A stretch of 64,000 nucleotides of DNA from NCBI RefSeq assembly GCF_006345805.1, contig NC_043023.1, positions 6,014,001 to 6,078,000 on the forward strand. The letters are read 5' to 3'. The DNA comes from Octopus sinensis (lineage: Eukaryota). Shown one piece after another: positions 2,829 through 50,931 of this stretch. How positions within the stretch are numbered: the first letter of the stretch is position 1; the number at the start of each line of letters is the position of its first letter. Under the pieces are notes generated by a model. The model made no database searches. It saw only the letters and a list, made by a program, of their open reading frames with translations, and was not told the origin of the DNA. A program made the position numbers and the translations under genes.

Positions 2829-3199
2829 GTACATCTGGAAAAAGGACAAACGGGACTTCAACGTGGCTGGCAGTGATGACCTTATCTCCACAGTAGAAAA
2901 CGAGGGAACACTTGTCTTCAAGCAACCCAAAAAGAAGGATGCCGGCACGTATCAATGTTTTGCAAACAACTCTTATGGGGTGGCCATGTCAGGCATCGTT
3001 GAGCTACGTCTTGCCTTCCTGCAGCCGTACACCAATCAGGAACCAGAGACCATCACTGTATCACCAGGGTCATGTCTCGTCCTCCCTTGTAACAAGCCAA
3101 TCAGTTACCCTGAGGCCAAATTCACATGGCTATTGAAATACAGTGATGGGCGATTAAAGGTCCTTGACTTCACTGAGCGAATCCAAATGGATCACAAAA
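2829..3199 (+). CDS. Cassette A exon: Ig1 C-half + Ig2 N-half (YIWKKDK...ERIQMDHK)
   Basis: Polypyrimidine tract and acaaccag acceptor; donor gttagt at 3200; 371 nt, same length as paralogous exon 32351-32721; phase 2 to phase 1. Confidence 0.9.
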
Positions 3200-3662
3200 G
3201 TTAGTATTACCTTCTTACCATTGCCACCACTTCATCTTTGATTTATAGATATCAGCATGTTATTGTTTAGCTCTAGGTCAGTCCTGATCCTTAGACAGAC
3301 ATGGTCAAAGATGTTCCAGCAGTGACCATCCCATCTATTCAAACATAGTGTACATAGGACTACATTGCCTAATGTCATTGCCGTCATACTGGCACTTGTG
3401 CCGGTGGCACGTGAATAAACATTCAAGTGAGGTTGTGCAGATGGCACATAAAAAACACCATTTGAGCATGGCTGTTGCCAGTACCACCTGACTGGCCCTC
3501 GTGCCGGTGGCACGTAAAATCAGCCACTACACTCTCGGAGTGGTTGGCGTTAGGAAGGGCATCCAGCTGTAGAAACTTTGCCAGATCAAGATTGGAGCCT
3601 GGTGCAGCCATCCGGTTCACCATTCCTCAGTCAAATCGTCCAACCCATGCTAGCATGGAAAG

Positions 3663-3978
3663 CGGATGATGATGATGATGATGATGACGACGACGACGAA
3701 GATGGCGACAACGACAATGAAGATGATGATGATGATGACGACGACGACGAAGATGATGATGATGATGATGATTATGACAATGACGATGACGCCGATTACG
3801 ATGGCGACGATGACAGTGAAGATGATGATGATGATGAAGATGATGATGATGATCATGATGACGATGACGATGACGATGACGACGATGACGATGACGATGA
3901 TGATGATGACGATGATGATGACGATGACGATGATGACGATGACGATGACGATGACGATGATGATGATGATGATGATGC
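3663..3978. repeat. (GAT/GAC)n microsatellite grown from a SINE tail
   Basis: Direct inspection. Confidence 0.95.
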
Positions 3979-4734
3979 TGATAGTATAATAGTTGTCGCA
4001 GTTACTTAGCCCTAGAACAGCCCTGATGCAAAAGAGGCATGATCAAAGATGTTCCAGCTGTCAATGCCCTATCTTTTATCAAGACACAGTGTATCTTGGA
4101 CTACACTATCTAATGTATAGTATAGTAATTAGTGTTAGCGAACATTTGGACTTTTATTCAGACATAGCAAATCTGGAACTACATTATCTGATATGATTGA
4201 TTCCCTGCTTCTGCTTTCAATCAAAATATTAATGGAAGAAGATAGAATATTTAAATTGAAACGCCCCACTGACTAACAGGTAAGGAGGTTGTTCATAGTT
4301 GCATTGTTGCTTTGGTAGAGTTACTACTATGACTTAGATAGTTCAGTGATTTGTGAGTGCTAAGGACAGCAGATGTGTAAGGGAAACCGCCATGATATAT
4401 ATATATTTCTTTACTACCCACAAGGGGCTAAACATAGAGGGGACAAACAAGGACAGACAAACGGATTAAGTCGATTACATCGACCCCAGTGCATAACTGG
4501 TACTTAGTTTATCTATTTCTTTACTACCCACAAGGGGCTAAACATAGAGGGGACAAACAAGGACAGACAAACGGATTAAGTCGATTACATCGACCCCAGT
4601 ACATAACTGGTACTTAATTTATCGACCATAATGAAGACACCAATATTAAAATATTAATGTAAAATAACAATAATTTCACACCTAGAAATAAACACAAAAT
4701 TCTCTCCACACCTATTCTCCTAATTCTTTTCCAG

Positions 4735-46921: not shown

Positions 46922-47351
46922 GTAAGTAGTGACACTGATGATGAGATGATGATGATGATGTATATGTGTATACTGTTGACATTCGAAAATCCAATTCCTT
47001 CAGATTTCTGGCATGGATTTCAAATTTACCAGGTTAAAATTCTGAGGATCTATTTTATTTAGCTGAATCAAAATTCTGTAGAACTATTTTATTTAGCTGA
47101 ATCAAAATTCTGTAGAACTATTTTATTTAGCTAGTGAATATTAAAATTTCATTTGCTTTTCACTTAATGTTTAATTTTCTTTCTTTAAAGGACTGTACAG
47201 GTAGTAATTTTCTGTTAAATATATACAGCATATATAACCATAAAAAGTCCAGAATTTTTGAAAATTTGGCACTCCTCAGGTCCAGATGTTGCTGGATTTT
47301 TGAATGTCAACCTGTATTTGAGTGTGTGCGTATGCATAACTTTGGGTAGAT

Positions 47352-49790
47352 ATAGCAGGTTGAATCAAAAGCTTTTTCAGATTTTTGGCAACTTATACCT
47401 CCAAGTTATATCACTAATTTGATACAATCATTGCTTATTCTTTATTCTTATATGTAACAAAAATTAATTGCTTATTCTTTGTTTTACAACTTTAACAATG
47501 AGTGGGAACAAAAATTACAATTAGAGCCATTTTATGGGACCTGTGGAAAATAGACTGAGGGCAAGGACAGCATCAAAAGAAATTACTGATGTGGAAAGCC
47601 CAGAAACTGTCAACAATTGCATAGCACAAAACTGGTTCAGATATATCAAGGAAGGTGAAACCATCCCTAAAAACAAACCAAGGTCAAGGAGACATTCTGT
47701 TGTGAAAGGTGAGGCCTTGTTTGGAATCACTGAACAGCAACCAAGCACAAGTACTCATATATTGTCTGCAGAACTTGGTCTGTCATAAACAACTCCATAA
47801 ATTCAGCCTTGTGAACAGATGCTTTTGAGAACCACCTCATGAACTGACCAATGACCAAACTCAACAGTGTGTGAATATTTACAAACATCTAAACGTGGCT
47901 GTTGCCAGTGCCGTCCCAACTGGCCTCCGTGCCGGTGGCACGTTAAAAGCACCATCCGATCGTGGCCGTTTGCCAGCCTCGTCTGGCACTTGTGTCAGTA
48001 GCACGTAAAAAGCACCCACTACACTCATGGAGTGGTTGGCATTAGGAAGGGCATCCAGCTGTAGAAACTCTACCAGATCAGACTGGAGCCTGGTGCAGCC
48101 TCCGGGCTTCCCAGACCCCGTTGAACCGTCCAACCCATGCTAGCATGGAAAGCGGACGCTAAACGATGATGATGATGATGATGATGATGAACCATGGGTA
48201 AATCCGTGTGATGCCCATTCTAAGTTGTTTTTTTTTGTTTTTGTTTTGCTGTGTGGAGAGAAAGTAGAAATGACCAGTTATACTGAACATGTTTGATGAC
48301 ATAAAAGACACTTTTTTTATCCAAAAATGTCTCCAAAAAATCACCCTGGCTCCTATATACAAAGTTAGGCCTATACTTAGATTCTTGAACGCAGTGAACT
48401 GGCAGAATGTTAGTATGCTGGGCAAAATGCTTAGCAGTATTTTGTCTGTCTTTATGCTCTGATTGCAACTCATCATCATCATCACTGTTTAACGTCCGCT
48501 TTCCATGCTAGCATGGGTTGGACGATTTTGACTGAGGGCTGGTGAACCAGATGGCTGTACCAAGCTCCAATCTTGATTTGGCAGAGTTTCTACAGCTGGA
48601 TGCCCTTCCTAATGCCAACCACACCTAGTGGGTGCTTTTTACCTAGTGGCACGGGGGCCAGTCAGGCGGTTCTGGCAACGACCTCACTTGAATCTTTTTA
48701 CACATGCCACTGGCACAGGTGCCAGTAAGGCAATGCTGGTAACGATCATGCTCAAAAGGTGCCTCCTACATGCCACTGGCACGGAAACCAGTTAGTCGTT
48801 CTGGCAACGATCATGCTCGGATGGTGCTCTTAGCACACTACTAGCACGGGCACAAGTGCCAGTAAGGCAACGCTGGTAACGATCACACTCGAATGGTGCC
48901 TTTTATGTGCCACTGGCATGGAAGCCGGTTAGCCACTCTGTCAACGATCACGCTTCTATGGTGCTCTTTGCACCCCGCTAGTATGGACGCCAGTCATCGA
49001 ATGTGATTTTGATTTCACTTGCCTCAACAGGTATTCGCAAGCAGAGTTTAGTATCCAAGGAAGGAAAGGGTACGCATAAGCGGGTTGGTTACACTCCTGG
49101 CATGGGCCACAGGTTATGGTCTCACTTGGGCTTGCCGGGTCTTCGCAAGCACAGCATATTTCCAAAAGTCTCAGTCGCTAGTCATTTCCTCAGTGAGACC
49201 TGAAAAATGTATCTATTTTTGAATCCTAATAAGAGAAATCAGTGGTTTCATTACAGCAAGACATCAGAATCTGTTGTTTAACAGGCGGTCATTTTCTGTG
49301 TTTGGTGGAATTTCAAGGTGGTATTGTCCCAGATGGTCATGCTGTGAATGCTAACCTTTATGCTCAACAACTGCAGTGAATATATGATACTTTGAAACCT
49401 GCAACCTAGCATTACTCATTCAAAGATGTGCACTTCTATAGCATAACAATGCTCCAGCACACACTTCCAATATAACCAAGTGCAAACTTGAGGGGGGTGA
49501 AAGGGTGGTCTCACCCAGCCTACAGTCAAGCCCTTGCACCACCAGATTACCATCTTTTTAGAGCCATAGCTCACTTCCTGCTCAGACAAAGGCTAAACAA
49601 AGCAGATGAGGTTGAAAAGGAGTGTGGGGAGTTTTGGTCTCTAAACTAAGCAAATGGTTGAAGTGTTGAGCTGAGCTTCTGGTACGACGATAGCAACTGA
49701 CAATTGAATATGATGGCAAATATTTTGATGAATAGATGCATTTCATATGAAATTTGTTTCAACTATTAATTAAAGTTTGAAATACAGAAA
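47352..49790 (+). mobile_element. Mariner remnant split by SINE insertions (N-terminal part 47352-47870, C-terminal part 49200-49790)
   Basis: AQNWFR..KPRS HTH region; CVWWNFK and HPAYSQALAPPDYHLFRA (YSPDL/D34D motif); continuity of the two halves is inferred. Confidence 0.65.
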
Positions 49791-50787
49791 AACTTTTATT
49801 TTAATGATTGGTATCTCTCTCTCTCTCTCATTGTATATTTGTGTATGTGTAAGTGTATATATATATATATATATAGCTTCTATATATATAGCTTCTATAT
49901 ATATATATATATATATATATATATATATATATATATATATTTGTAAAAAATGAAGTTCGAAAATGCTGCTATATTATACAATTTTTAATTTTTATATATA
50001 CATTATAACATGTTTCAGTTCCTGAAATGAACCTTATCAAAAAAAGTTATATATAAAAAAAGACATATATATATATACATACATACATACATACATACAT
50101 ACATACATACATACATACATACATATATATATATGGTTCGCTTTGTTCTCTTACTTTATTATCATCTTATAATCATCTCATAATAATAACTTTTATGACT
50201 TTTATTACTACCTCAGTCCATCTAAATGTATATATTTGTCGTTACCTTTCATAAAAAGCCTTTTTATACTTTTATTTACAATGTGCATTTTCGTTGATTT
50301 TTCATATTTTACCCTTACATTTCCATGTGTATCTTATATTTTCTTTTTGTAACATATTTCTACTATATATATATGTATATATATGTGTGTGTGTGTGTGT
50401 GTGTGTGTGTATGTATGTATGTATATATATATATATATATATATATATATATATATATATACACACATACAATTGAGTATACAAACAAAAGTAGGACACT
50501 CAACACATTTATTGAGAGTTACATGTATAGATCAAAGCAGTTTGATTCAAACTCCTTGGCTACTCTGAGTTTCAAGCATGATAGCCAACAGCTGAGAATT
50601 AGCATCACATCTTGAAACTCAGAGTACCAAAGAGTTTGAATCAAACTGTTTGAGCTCTCTCTCTCTCTCTCTCTCTCTCTCTCTCTCTATATATATATAT
50701 ATATATATATATATATATATATATATATATACATACTTACATACATGTGGACACTCACACATATGTATATACTCTTTACTTTTGCAG

Positions 50788-50931
50788 AATATCCCAATAA
50801 CAATAAGTTTATAGTAAGGAAGACCAACCTGACTGTCATCAACCTCACATACCAAGATTCCATGACCATCCAGTGTAATATCAGTAATATCCATGGGTAT
50901 ATCTTCGCTAATGTCTTTCTAAATGTCTTCG
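50788..50931 (+). CDS. Cassette B exon: Ig4 C-half (YPNNNKFIVRKTNLTVINLTYQDSMTIQCNISNIHGYIFANVFLNVF)
   Basis: ttttgcag acceptor, gtgagt donor, 144 nt. Confidence 0.92.

Follow-up and report, generated by a model that had tools for sequence, protein, structure and literature searches.

Two tandem immunoglobulin cassettes of predicted L1 type in an octopus locus are kept in frame and differ most on one sheet of Ig2

Background

Protocadherins have undergone a large, independent expansion in cephalopods; the octopus case was the only expansion discussed in the searchable literature, where no description of an octopus array of L1-family horseshoe modules was found. The closest described molecules belong to the L1CAM family (neurofascin, NrCAM, L1 and CHL1, with invertebrate neuroglian), whose members carry six immunoglobulin (Ig) domains, fibronectin type III (FN3) domains, a transmembrane segment and an ankyrin-binding part. 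Adhesion through the G-F-C sheet of Ig2 is a documented mechanism of this family (PMC9633819, PMC3406286). In neurofascin homodimers and in the contactin-1/neurofascin complex the Ig2 G strands pair, the C strand and CD loop are used, residues F168, M170, M174, T216 and I217 of neurofascin are required for binding, and glycans close to the Ig2 interface modulate neurofascin/contactin binding (PMC9633819); the Ig2 FG loop has a role in axonin-1 and TAG-1 (PMC3406286). Here we analysed a 64,000-nucleotide (nt) stretch of octopus DNA (Octopus sinensis contig NC_043023.1, positions 6,014,001 to 6,078,000; hereafter the window), which carries two tandem six-exon cassettes, A and B, predicted to encode most of such an Ig1-Ig4 head.

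The explanation that we prefer, at about even odds, makes A and B paralogous modules of an L1-family array in octopus, both retained and diverging fast, with the Ig2 binding face remodelled and with positive selection on it plausible but not established. The retention of both frames and the concentration of replacements on one sheet of Ig2 are described below, followed by the evidence for exchange among cassettes and by the competing explanations.

Results

Structure of the two cassettes

A previous examination of the window from its letters alone (the sequence-only reading) had quoted motifs of A and B, and these motifs were located on the plus strand at the places where it had put them. The six exon pairs were found independently by a copy-number-filtered self-alignment and translation, and their boundaries were set from AG/GT sites and reading phase; the filter was needed because matches among short interspersed nuclear elements (SINEs) and microsatellites dominated the raw blastn, tblastx and blastp output. 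All exons lie on the plus strand. Exon 1 (A, 2829-3199; B, 32351-32721) encodes the second half of Ig1 and the first half of Ig2, is bounded by AG and GT, is entered in phase 2 and left in phase 1, and in A aligned to Ig1-Ig2 of neurofascin and contactin. Exon 2 (A, 4735-4863; B, 37349-37477) encodes Ig2 strands E-F-G with a hypervariable FG region, and in B the F-strand Cys has become Arg. Exon 3 (A, 6798-6900; B, 42147-42249) and exon 4 (A, 8319-8512; B, 43878-44071) encode the first and second halves of Ig3, exon 4 being nearly identical in the two cassettes. Exon 5 (A, 12264-12398; B, 46787-46921) and exon 6 (A, 14380-14523; B, 50788-50931) encode the two halves of Ig4.

Paired exons were equal in length (371, 129, 103, 194, 135 and 144 nt, adding up to 1076 nt or 358 codons), all 24 splice sites of A and B were canonical AG/GT, and the outermost exon coordinates coincided with the start and end of the span reported previously (2829-50931). 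Each cassette runs from the second half of Ig1 through Ig4. The introns were duplicated too, as seen from unique collinear intron blocks over the whole A/B interval, indicating a segmental tandem duplication.

Family and predicted fold

The whole cassette aligned end to end with Ig1-Ig4 of neurofascin, with contactins and hemolin next; the best PDB matches were neurofascin 7ok5_B (1.2e-52) and 3p3y (2.4e-45), covering query residues 2-356. A first homologous-protein search with A exon 1 gave no match, and an exhaustive search with this exon returned XP_036370269.1, annotated as “neurofascin-like” in O. sinensis, and octopus neuroglian. Neurofascin-like and neuroglian proteins of octopus were thus the closest relatives, and the first cassette of XP_036370269.1 was ~97% identical to A. 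Further relatives were an O. sinensis “neuroglian-like” protein (P0169), which carries a third cassette, D, and whose model ends after Ig6 without FN3 or transmembrane parts, and an O. vulgaris “hemicentin-1-like” protein. An octopus skin-mucus proteome paper was set aside as not specific to these cassettes; it names only a “neuroglian isoform”.

The AlphaFold2 model of P0169 had a predicted local distance difference test score of 80-90 over Ig1-3. It superposed on the horseshoes of neurofascin, CNTN4 and CNTN5 with template modelling (TM) scores of 0.88-0.89 and root-mean-square deviations of 2.9-3.0 Å (0.88 and 2.9 Å for 3p3y), and did not fit the extended Robo1 (TM 0.41). By homology, Ig1-Ig4 of A and of B would fold as a horseshoe, with Ig1 on Ig4 and Ig2 on Ig3. 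Judged from these alignments, A and B are modules of an L1CAM/neuroglian-type horseshoe head, from the second half of Ig1 to Ig4.

Retention of both reading frames

The statement of the sequence-only reading that neither cassette has stops or frameshifts was borne out, and no indel separated the two; no sign of decay (stop, indel or lost splice site) was seen in 2 × 1076 nt. For 133 substitutions placed randomly in both frames, the probability of no stop was 0.007-0.01. The 1076 exon nt contained no indel, whereas 2400 nt of aligned intron contained 76 gap events (31.7/kb), and even with one quarter of the intron gap rate the probability of zero exon indels was ≤2e-4. A nearby Ig6-like exon copy, on the other hand, did become frameshifted. 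Neutral decay of A and B is therefore unlikely and was rejected, and both cassettes are kept as spliceable open reading frames.

Substitution counts and rates

The counts given previously, 84 amino-acid differences and 19 codons with only synonymous differences over 358 codons, were reproduced exactly. A and B differed at 133 nucleotides, distributed 48/48/37 over the three codon positions, and 27 codons had at least two changes. With whole codons only, amino-acid and synonymous differences per exon were 32/8, 15/2, 7/4, 3/1, 9/3 and 15/1; the earlier hand-counted series of 32/8, 16/2, 8/4, 3/1, 9/3 and 16/1 agrees once the three split junction codons are added. The excess of replacements is not meaningful by itself, because with ~849 non-synonymous and ~225 synonymous sites unselected mutation predicts a ratio of ~3.8:1, and 4.4:1 was observed; the raw 84 versus 19 should thus be read with caution, as the neutral expectation.

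The ratio of non-synonymous to synonymous rates (dN/dS, omega) between A and B was 1.00 by NG86, 1.08 by LWL85, 1.38 by YN00, 1.31 by the maximum-likelihood routine of Biopython and 1.34 by our own fit of GY94 with F3x4 frequencies. No estimate in this range (1.00-1.38) was below 1, in agreement with the sequence-only reading, and likelihood ratios under GY94 rejected omega values of 0.6, 0.5 and 0.2 at p=4e-4, 1e-5 and 4e-19, respectively. The A/B dN was 0.135-0.147 and the dS 0.106-0.135, beside a Kimura two-parameter (K80) divergence of 0.162 for introns. Amino-acid-changing divergence is thus close to the intronic, neutral rate, and overall constraint on the protein sequence of A and B is close to nil.

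The data on selection comprise the pairwise A/B comparison and one outgroup cassette (D), with recombination present. Per-exon dS spanned 0.027 to 0.23. When changes in exons 1, 2, 5 and 6 were polarised by D, 42 non-synonymous (N) and 10 synonymous (S) changes fell on the A lineage and 44 N and 9 S on the B lineage, with 8 unpolarised. These equal numbers, together with the rejection of omega=0.6, exclude a model of one constrained and one decaying copy. In exon 6, A was the derived copy, with 14 N to 1 S changes relative to B and D; B exon 6 has kept the family-ancestral states. Multi-nucleotide codon differences had an observed/expected ratio of 1.56 in exons (p=0.02) and 1.22 in introns (p=0.10).

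Distribution of the replacements

Replacements were clustered (variance over 10-codon windows, permutation p≤1e-4, also without exon 4), and invariant runs were long, 28 codons outside exon 4 (p=0.007). Amino-acid difference was highest in Ig2 (37%), followed by Ig4 (28%), the second half of Ig1 (16%) and Ig3 (10%). Strands and loops were assigned, and sites mapped, on the AlphaFold2 model of sister cassette D (P0169). In Ig2, strands C, C', F and G differed at 15 of 29 positions (52%) versus one of 14 in strands A', B, D and E (Fisher 0.006; post hoc). The five neurofascin interface residues listed above correspond, in the neurofascin alignment, to cassette positions 99, 101, 109, 153 and 154, four of which differ between A and B. 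The expectation of the sequence-only reading that variable sites lie on a recognition surface was therefore upheld in location, the heaviest divergence falling on the C-C'-F-G sheet that is the adhesive interface of the family, and left short in rate, omega there being ~2.2 with p=0.12.

Over the 43 codons of the Ig2 face segment, 26 residues differed (60%), with dN=0.46 and dS=0.28; in the remainder of Ig2 omega was 0.5-0.6. The proportion of non-synonymous differences (pN) on the face was 0.34 versus an intronic divergence of 0.145 (2.4-fold; p=2e-6). As proof of selection this excess is weakened, since the proportion of synonymous differences (pS) is raised there too.

Among classes of positions ranked by family conservation, the intermediate class had an omega of 3.9 (p=0.027, uncorrected over three classes). 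At family-conserved positions the derived copy was A 11 times and B three times. The canonical B-F disulfides and core Trp residues are all kept in A; B is without the Ig2 disulfide, its F-strand position, Cys in eight of eight canonical sequences, being Arg. An N-V-T sequon lies on the Ig2 C strand in B and D and an N-F-T sequon also in B, neither being present in A; the Cys and sequon changes are at cassette positions 82, 97-99 and 113-115 (A, ~3073 and 3117-3125; B, 32639-32647 and 32687-32695).

A third cassette and exchange between cassettes

Cassette D was compared with the window through L001, 52.6 kb of the O. sinensis locus that carries it. The relations of A and B to D conflicted from exon to exon: in exon 1 A was nearer to D, in exon 6 B and D were 97% identical, and in exon 4 A and B were 98% identical to each other and ~74% to D. 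Between the window (B) and L001, identity was 88.1% in exon 1, ~72-74% in exons 2-4, ~93% in exon 5 (~77% with flanks) and 97% in exon 6. Immediately upstream of the acceptor of B exon 1, 328 nt of intron were 99.1% identical to L001 without gaps, and the exon 1 dS was 0.17-0.20. This abrupt change at the acceptor points to a recombination or conversion breakpoint. The contrast of a 99% intron and an 88% exon between B and D was also considered as positive selection in situ and rejected on account of that exon dS. The break lies within the alignment of 32023-32776 of the window with 12956-13709 of L001, and the Ig1 first-half exon upstream and its intron are 99-100% identical.

In the alignment of 8246-8672 with 43806-44235, exon 4 was 98% and its flanking intron ~95.6% identical between A and B, as against 78-88% in other blocks; exon 4 and its flanks are probably a recent A/B gene-conversion tract. 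The second cassette of XP_036370269.1 was a mosaic of A-like and D-like parts. An intronic block (10646-10886 and 45446-45689; 240 nt, 90% identical in A and B) had no open reading frame common to both copies, A being stopped in three frames and one frame being open through the B copy. It was considered as a shared regulatory element and rejected, since it is absent from the introns of cassette D in L001.

Flanking exons and other features of the window

The order along the plus strand was A exons 1-6, three copies of a single-exon Ig6-like domain, the Ig1 first-half exon serving cassette B (Ig1a), B exons 1-6, and two exons for Ig5 (Ig5a and Ig5b), and every junction along this order was phase-compatible. 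Downstream of A only Ig6-like exons were found, and Ig5a and Ig5b downstream of B. The Ig6-like exon is triplicated in a tandem unit of ~3 kb. Copy 1 (19527-19796, plus strand) is frameshifted: it carries a small insertion and three 1-nt deletions, each of them within a short homopolymer, so that an assembly error is possible; copy 2 (23731-24025, plus) and copy 3 (26762-27056, plus) are intact and ~98% identical. The phase of copy 2 fits the donor of A exon 6, and this junction is shared with XP_036370269.1. Ig1a (31227-31333, plus) combines a good acceptor with the donor GTATGT and is 99.3% identical to L001. Ig5a (57075-57257, plus), the first half of Ig5, fits in phase the donor of B exon 6, and Ig5b (61563-61661, plus) is the second half. 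The window yielded no signal-peptide exon, whether upstream of B and Ig1a or elsewhere, and no FN3 or transmembrane exon was detected when it was searched by tblastn with the full-length neuroglian of octopus; it ends ~2.3 kb past Ig5b.

Public gene models chain such units serially. This joining is doubtful, because the XP_036370269.1 model spans 493 kb over unrelated genes and parts from the adjoining model where a 1-nt deletion occurs. An O. sinensis Ig6-like copy (L001 9776-10063) has a 1-nt deletion precisely where two RefSeq gene models split.

On the minus strand, 29020-29061 is an inverted fragment whose 14 encoded residues (VLPCKASGEPQPTY) match the end of Ig1a exactly, and it lies within a ~2.7-kb stretch missing from the corresponding O. 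sinensis interval. Trinucleotide arrays were (ATT)n of ~1.25 kb at 15216-16467 and (TAT)n of ~1.6 kb at 55426-57053, the latter ending ~20 nt upstream of the Ig5a acceptor. A SINE-like repeat of ~420 bp occurred in ~20 copies on both strands, 75-93% identical (e.g. 24-454, 5470-5862, 6265-6680, 7208-7628, 11804-12215 and 43384-43798), and multi-copy sequence made up ~42% of the window. A weak tRNA match at 60471-60542 (minus strand; 31.5 bits versus an Rfam threshold of 29) could be a tRNA gene or the tRNA-derived head of a repeat.

Discussion

Preferred explanation and points against it

A and B would have arisen by a tandem segmental duplication, introns included, within an octopus-specific array of modules. 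After the duplication most ancestral constraints on the horseshoe may have been relaxed, with selection keeping just a foldable, in-frame module; the Ig2 binding face would have been remodelled, from which A and B are predicted very probably to differ in binding specificity, and gene conversion between array members would shuffle segments. Positive selection is a plausible cause, and the likeliest, of the extreme divergence of the Ig2 face, although statistically unestablished. The sequence-only reading had proposed diversifying selection rather than neutral decay: decay is indeed rejected, but the case for an omega above 1 was not made.

Several results weigh against adaptive remodelling of the Ig2 face. 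Omega did not exceed 1 significantly, either overall (GY94 1.34, likelihood-ratio p=0.21) or on the face (omega 1.7-2.2, likelihood-ratio p=0.12). The picture of an invariant framework with variable loops, drawn previously, did not hold: strands differed at 41 of 182 residues (22.5%) and non-strand residues at 43 of 176 (24.4%; p=0.71), and positions conserved among eight canonical neuroglians were changed in 20% of cases and variable ones in 27% (p=0.20), both as plain relaxation predicts. The contrast between the Ig2 sheets was spotted before the literature was consulted and is hence partly post hoc. Intron divergence was measured in alignable unique blocks only and is probably an underestimate. 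On the Ig2 face pS was 0.24 between A and B and 0.36-0.41 relative to D, as against ~0.15 in the rest of Ig2, so that the segment may be of older or imported ancestry. The mosaic similarity to D means that gene conversion confounds dN/dS, and it is a live alternative source of clustered multi-nucleotide differences. Three positions that are otherwise strictly invariant are changed in B (Asp16Arg, Gly107Trp and Cys144Arg, the last at the Ig2 disulfide), A has gained an unpaired Cys (GSCLVLPC) near the Ig2 face, and no B-like protein was among the annotated octopus proteins returned.

Competing explanations

Pure relaxation, in which redundant modules drift at the neutral rate, only frame-breaking mutations are purged and recognition surfaces do not change adaptively, is a possible but somewhat doubtful account. 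An omega indistinguishable from 1, differences spread almost evenly over codon positions, equal replacement frequencies in strands and loops and at conserved and variable family positions, the loss of invariant residues including a disulfide Cys, and a multi-nucleotide clustering only modestly higher in exons than in introns are all what it would produce. It does not readily accommodate the strong clustering of replacements, one Ig2 sheet left nearly untouched beside another changed by half, or a face pN well above intronic divergence, and the long invariant runs imply that constraint persists at many sites, so that the remaining sites must average an omega above 1. Mosaic ancestry, in which most A-B differences were imported by gene conversion or unequal crossing-over from older cassettes, is likewise a possible but somewhat doubtful account; it would make pairwise dN/dS uninformative on selection after the duplication, and mosaic ancestry in tandem arrays can mimic signatures of selection. 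The exon-by-exon disagreement in relation to D, the wide span of per-exon dS, the sharp identity break at the exon 1 acceptor, the raised pS in the hypervariable Ig2 segment and the mixed second cassette of XP_036370269.1 all fit it, but the most divergent patches of B (RRDH, RDHWSTKALN and ARVAFNMFVRIFSVGKS) had no match in any cassette or neuroglian recovered and so have no known donor, and conversion explains the distribution of variants and not their retention in frame.

It is improbable that one of the cassettes, B more likely than A, is an unexpressed pseudo-module, silenced too recently to have been hit by a stop or an indel. The loss of the Ig2 disulfide Cys and of two more invariant residues, the lack of a B-like protein among those returned and the presence of dead exon copies at the locus would suit such a history. 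Against it, polarised changes were equal on the two lineages with the same N:S ratio, the pairwise omega rejects a model of a constrained plus a neutral copy (0.6; p=4e-4), B alone would have escaped a stop over 66 substitutions with a probability of ~0.08, and a gap rate half that of introns would have left it with ~17 indels; each of the 12 splice sites of B is intact, and its frame continues in phase into the Ig5 exons. Very improbable, in our judgement, is a Dscam-like arrangement of mutually exclusive exon blocks of one gene, with recognition isoforms chosen by splicing. Such an arrangement would share with this locus tandem duplicated exons that encode the same domain parts with identical lengths and phases and diverge on the homophilic interface. 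Each unit, however, comes with a separate Ig1a, and A is succeeded by Ig6-like exons but B by Ig5 exons, so there are no shared flanking constitutive exons; public gene models chain the units in series, and the sole intronic block that is conserved occurs in A and B but not in D.

A wider reading, which we regard as unlikely, goes beyond retained and fast-diverging modules: the locus would be an octopus-specific device for recognition diversity built from whole L1-type horseshoes, either as a serial multi-horseshoe chain within one secreted or surface protein or through alternative entry from a single upstream signal-peptide exon, with Ig2 faces kept different by selection and flanks homogenised by conversion. 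If true, it would be a functional analogue of Dscam and of the clustered protocadherins, differently built. Should octopus prove to have a second adhesion family in which the binding head is duplicated and the surface for cell-cell recognition is remodelled, this would bear on the origin of surface diversity in its nervous or immune system.

Comparison with known systems

Several features are shared with the L1CAM family: Ig1-Ig4 of the cassettes align to neurofascin from end to end (E=1e-52), with the Ig4 motif QCNxSNxHGY present, the model of sister cassette D shows the horseshoe, and Ig5 exons come after cassette B as in canonical octopus neuroglian. The cassettes differ in that the horseshoe block recurs in tandem, with Ig6-like and Ig1a exons in between, that neither the window nor P0169 has FN3, transmembrane or ankyrin-binding parts, that B is without the Ig2 disulfide, and that A/B omega is ~1 whereas canonical neuroglian is strongly conserved. 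Hemolin, the four-Ig horseshoe immune protein of Lepidoptera (PDB 1BIH), is likewise an L1/neuroglian-type horseshoe freed from an adhesion molecule in one lineage, and it matched the cassette sequence (E=4e-34) and the cassette D model (TM 0.80). It is, however, a stand-alone secreted four-Ig gene, while the octopus modules form part of an array, B lacks its own signal-peptide exon, and automated annotation joins the modules in series.

The exon clusters of arthropod Dscam1 also consist of tandem duplicated exons for halves of horseshoe Ig domains, whose copies diverge at the homophilic surface and keep length and phase; here the duplication took in an entire six-exon block along with an Ig1a exon and Ig6-like exons, the window showed no flanking exons common to both cassettes, and there was no sign of mutually exclusive splicing. 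The clustered protocadherin expansion of octopus (Albertin et al. 2015, as cited in PMC10084454) is, like this array, a tandem expansion within one lineage of a gene family for neuronal adhesion and recognition. Protocadherins belong to another superfamily, and each of their variable exons has a promoter of its own and encodes an entire ectodomain. The array described here is small, with A and B in the window and three cassettes (s1, s2 and D) in two adjoining O. sinensis gene models.

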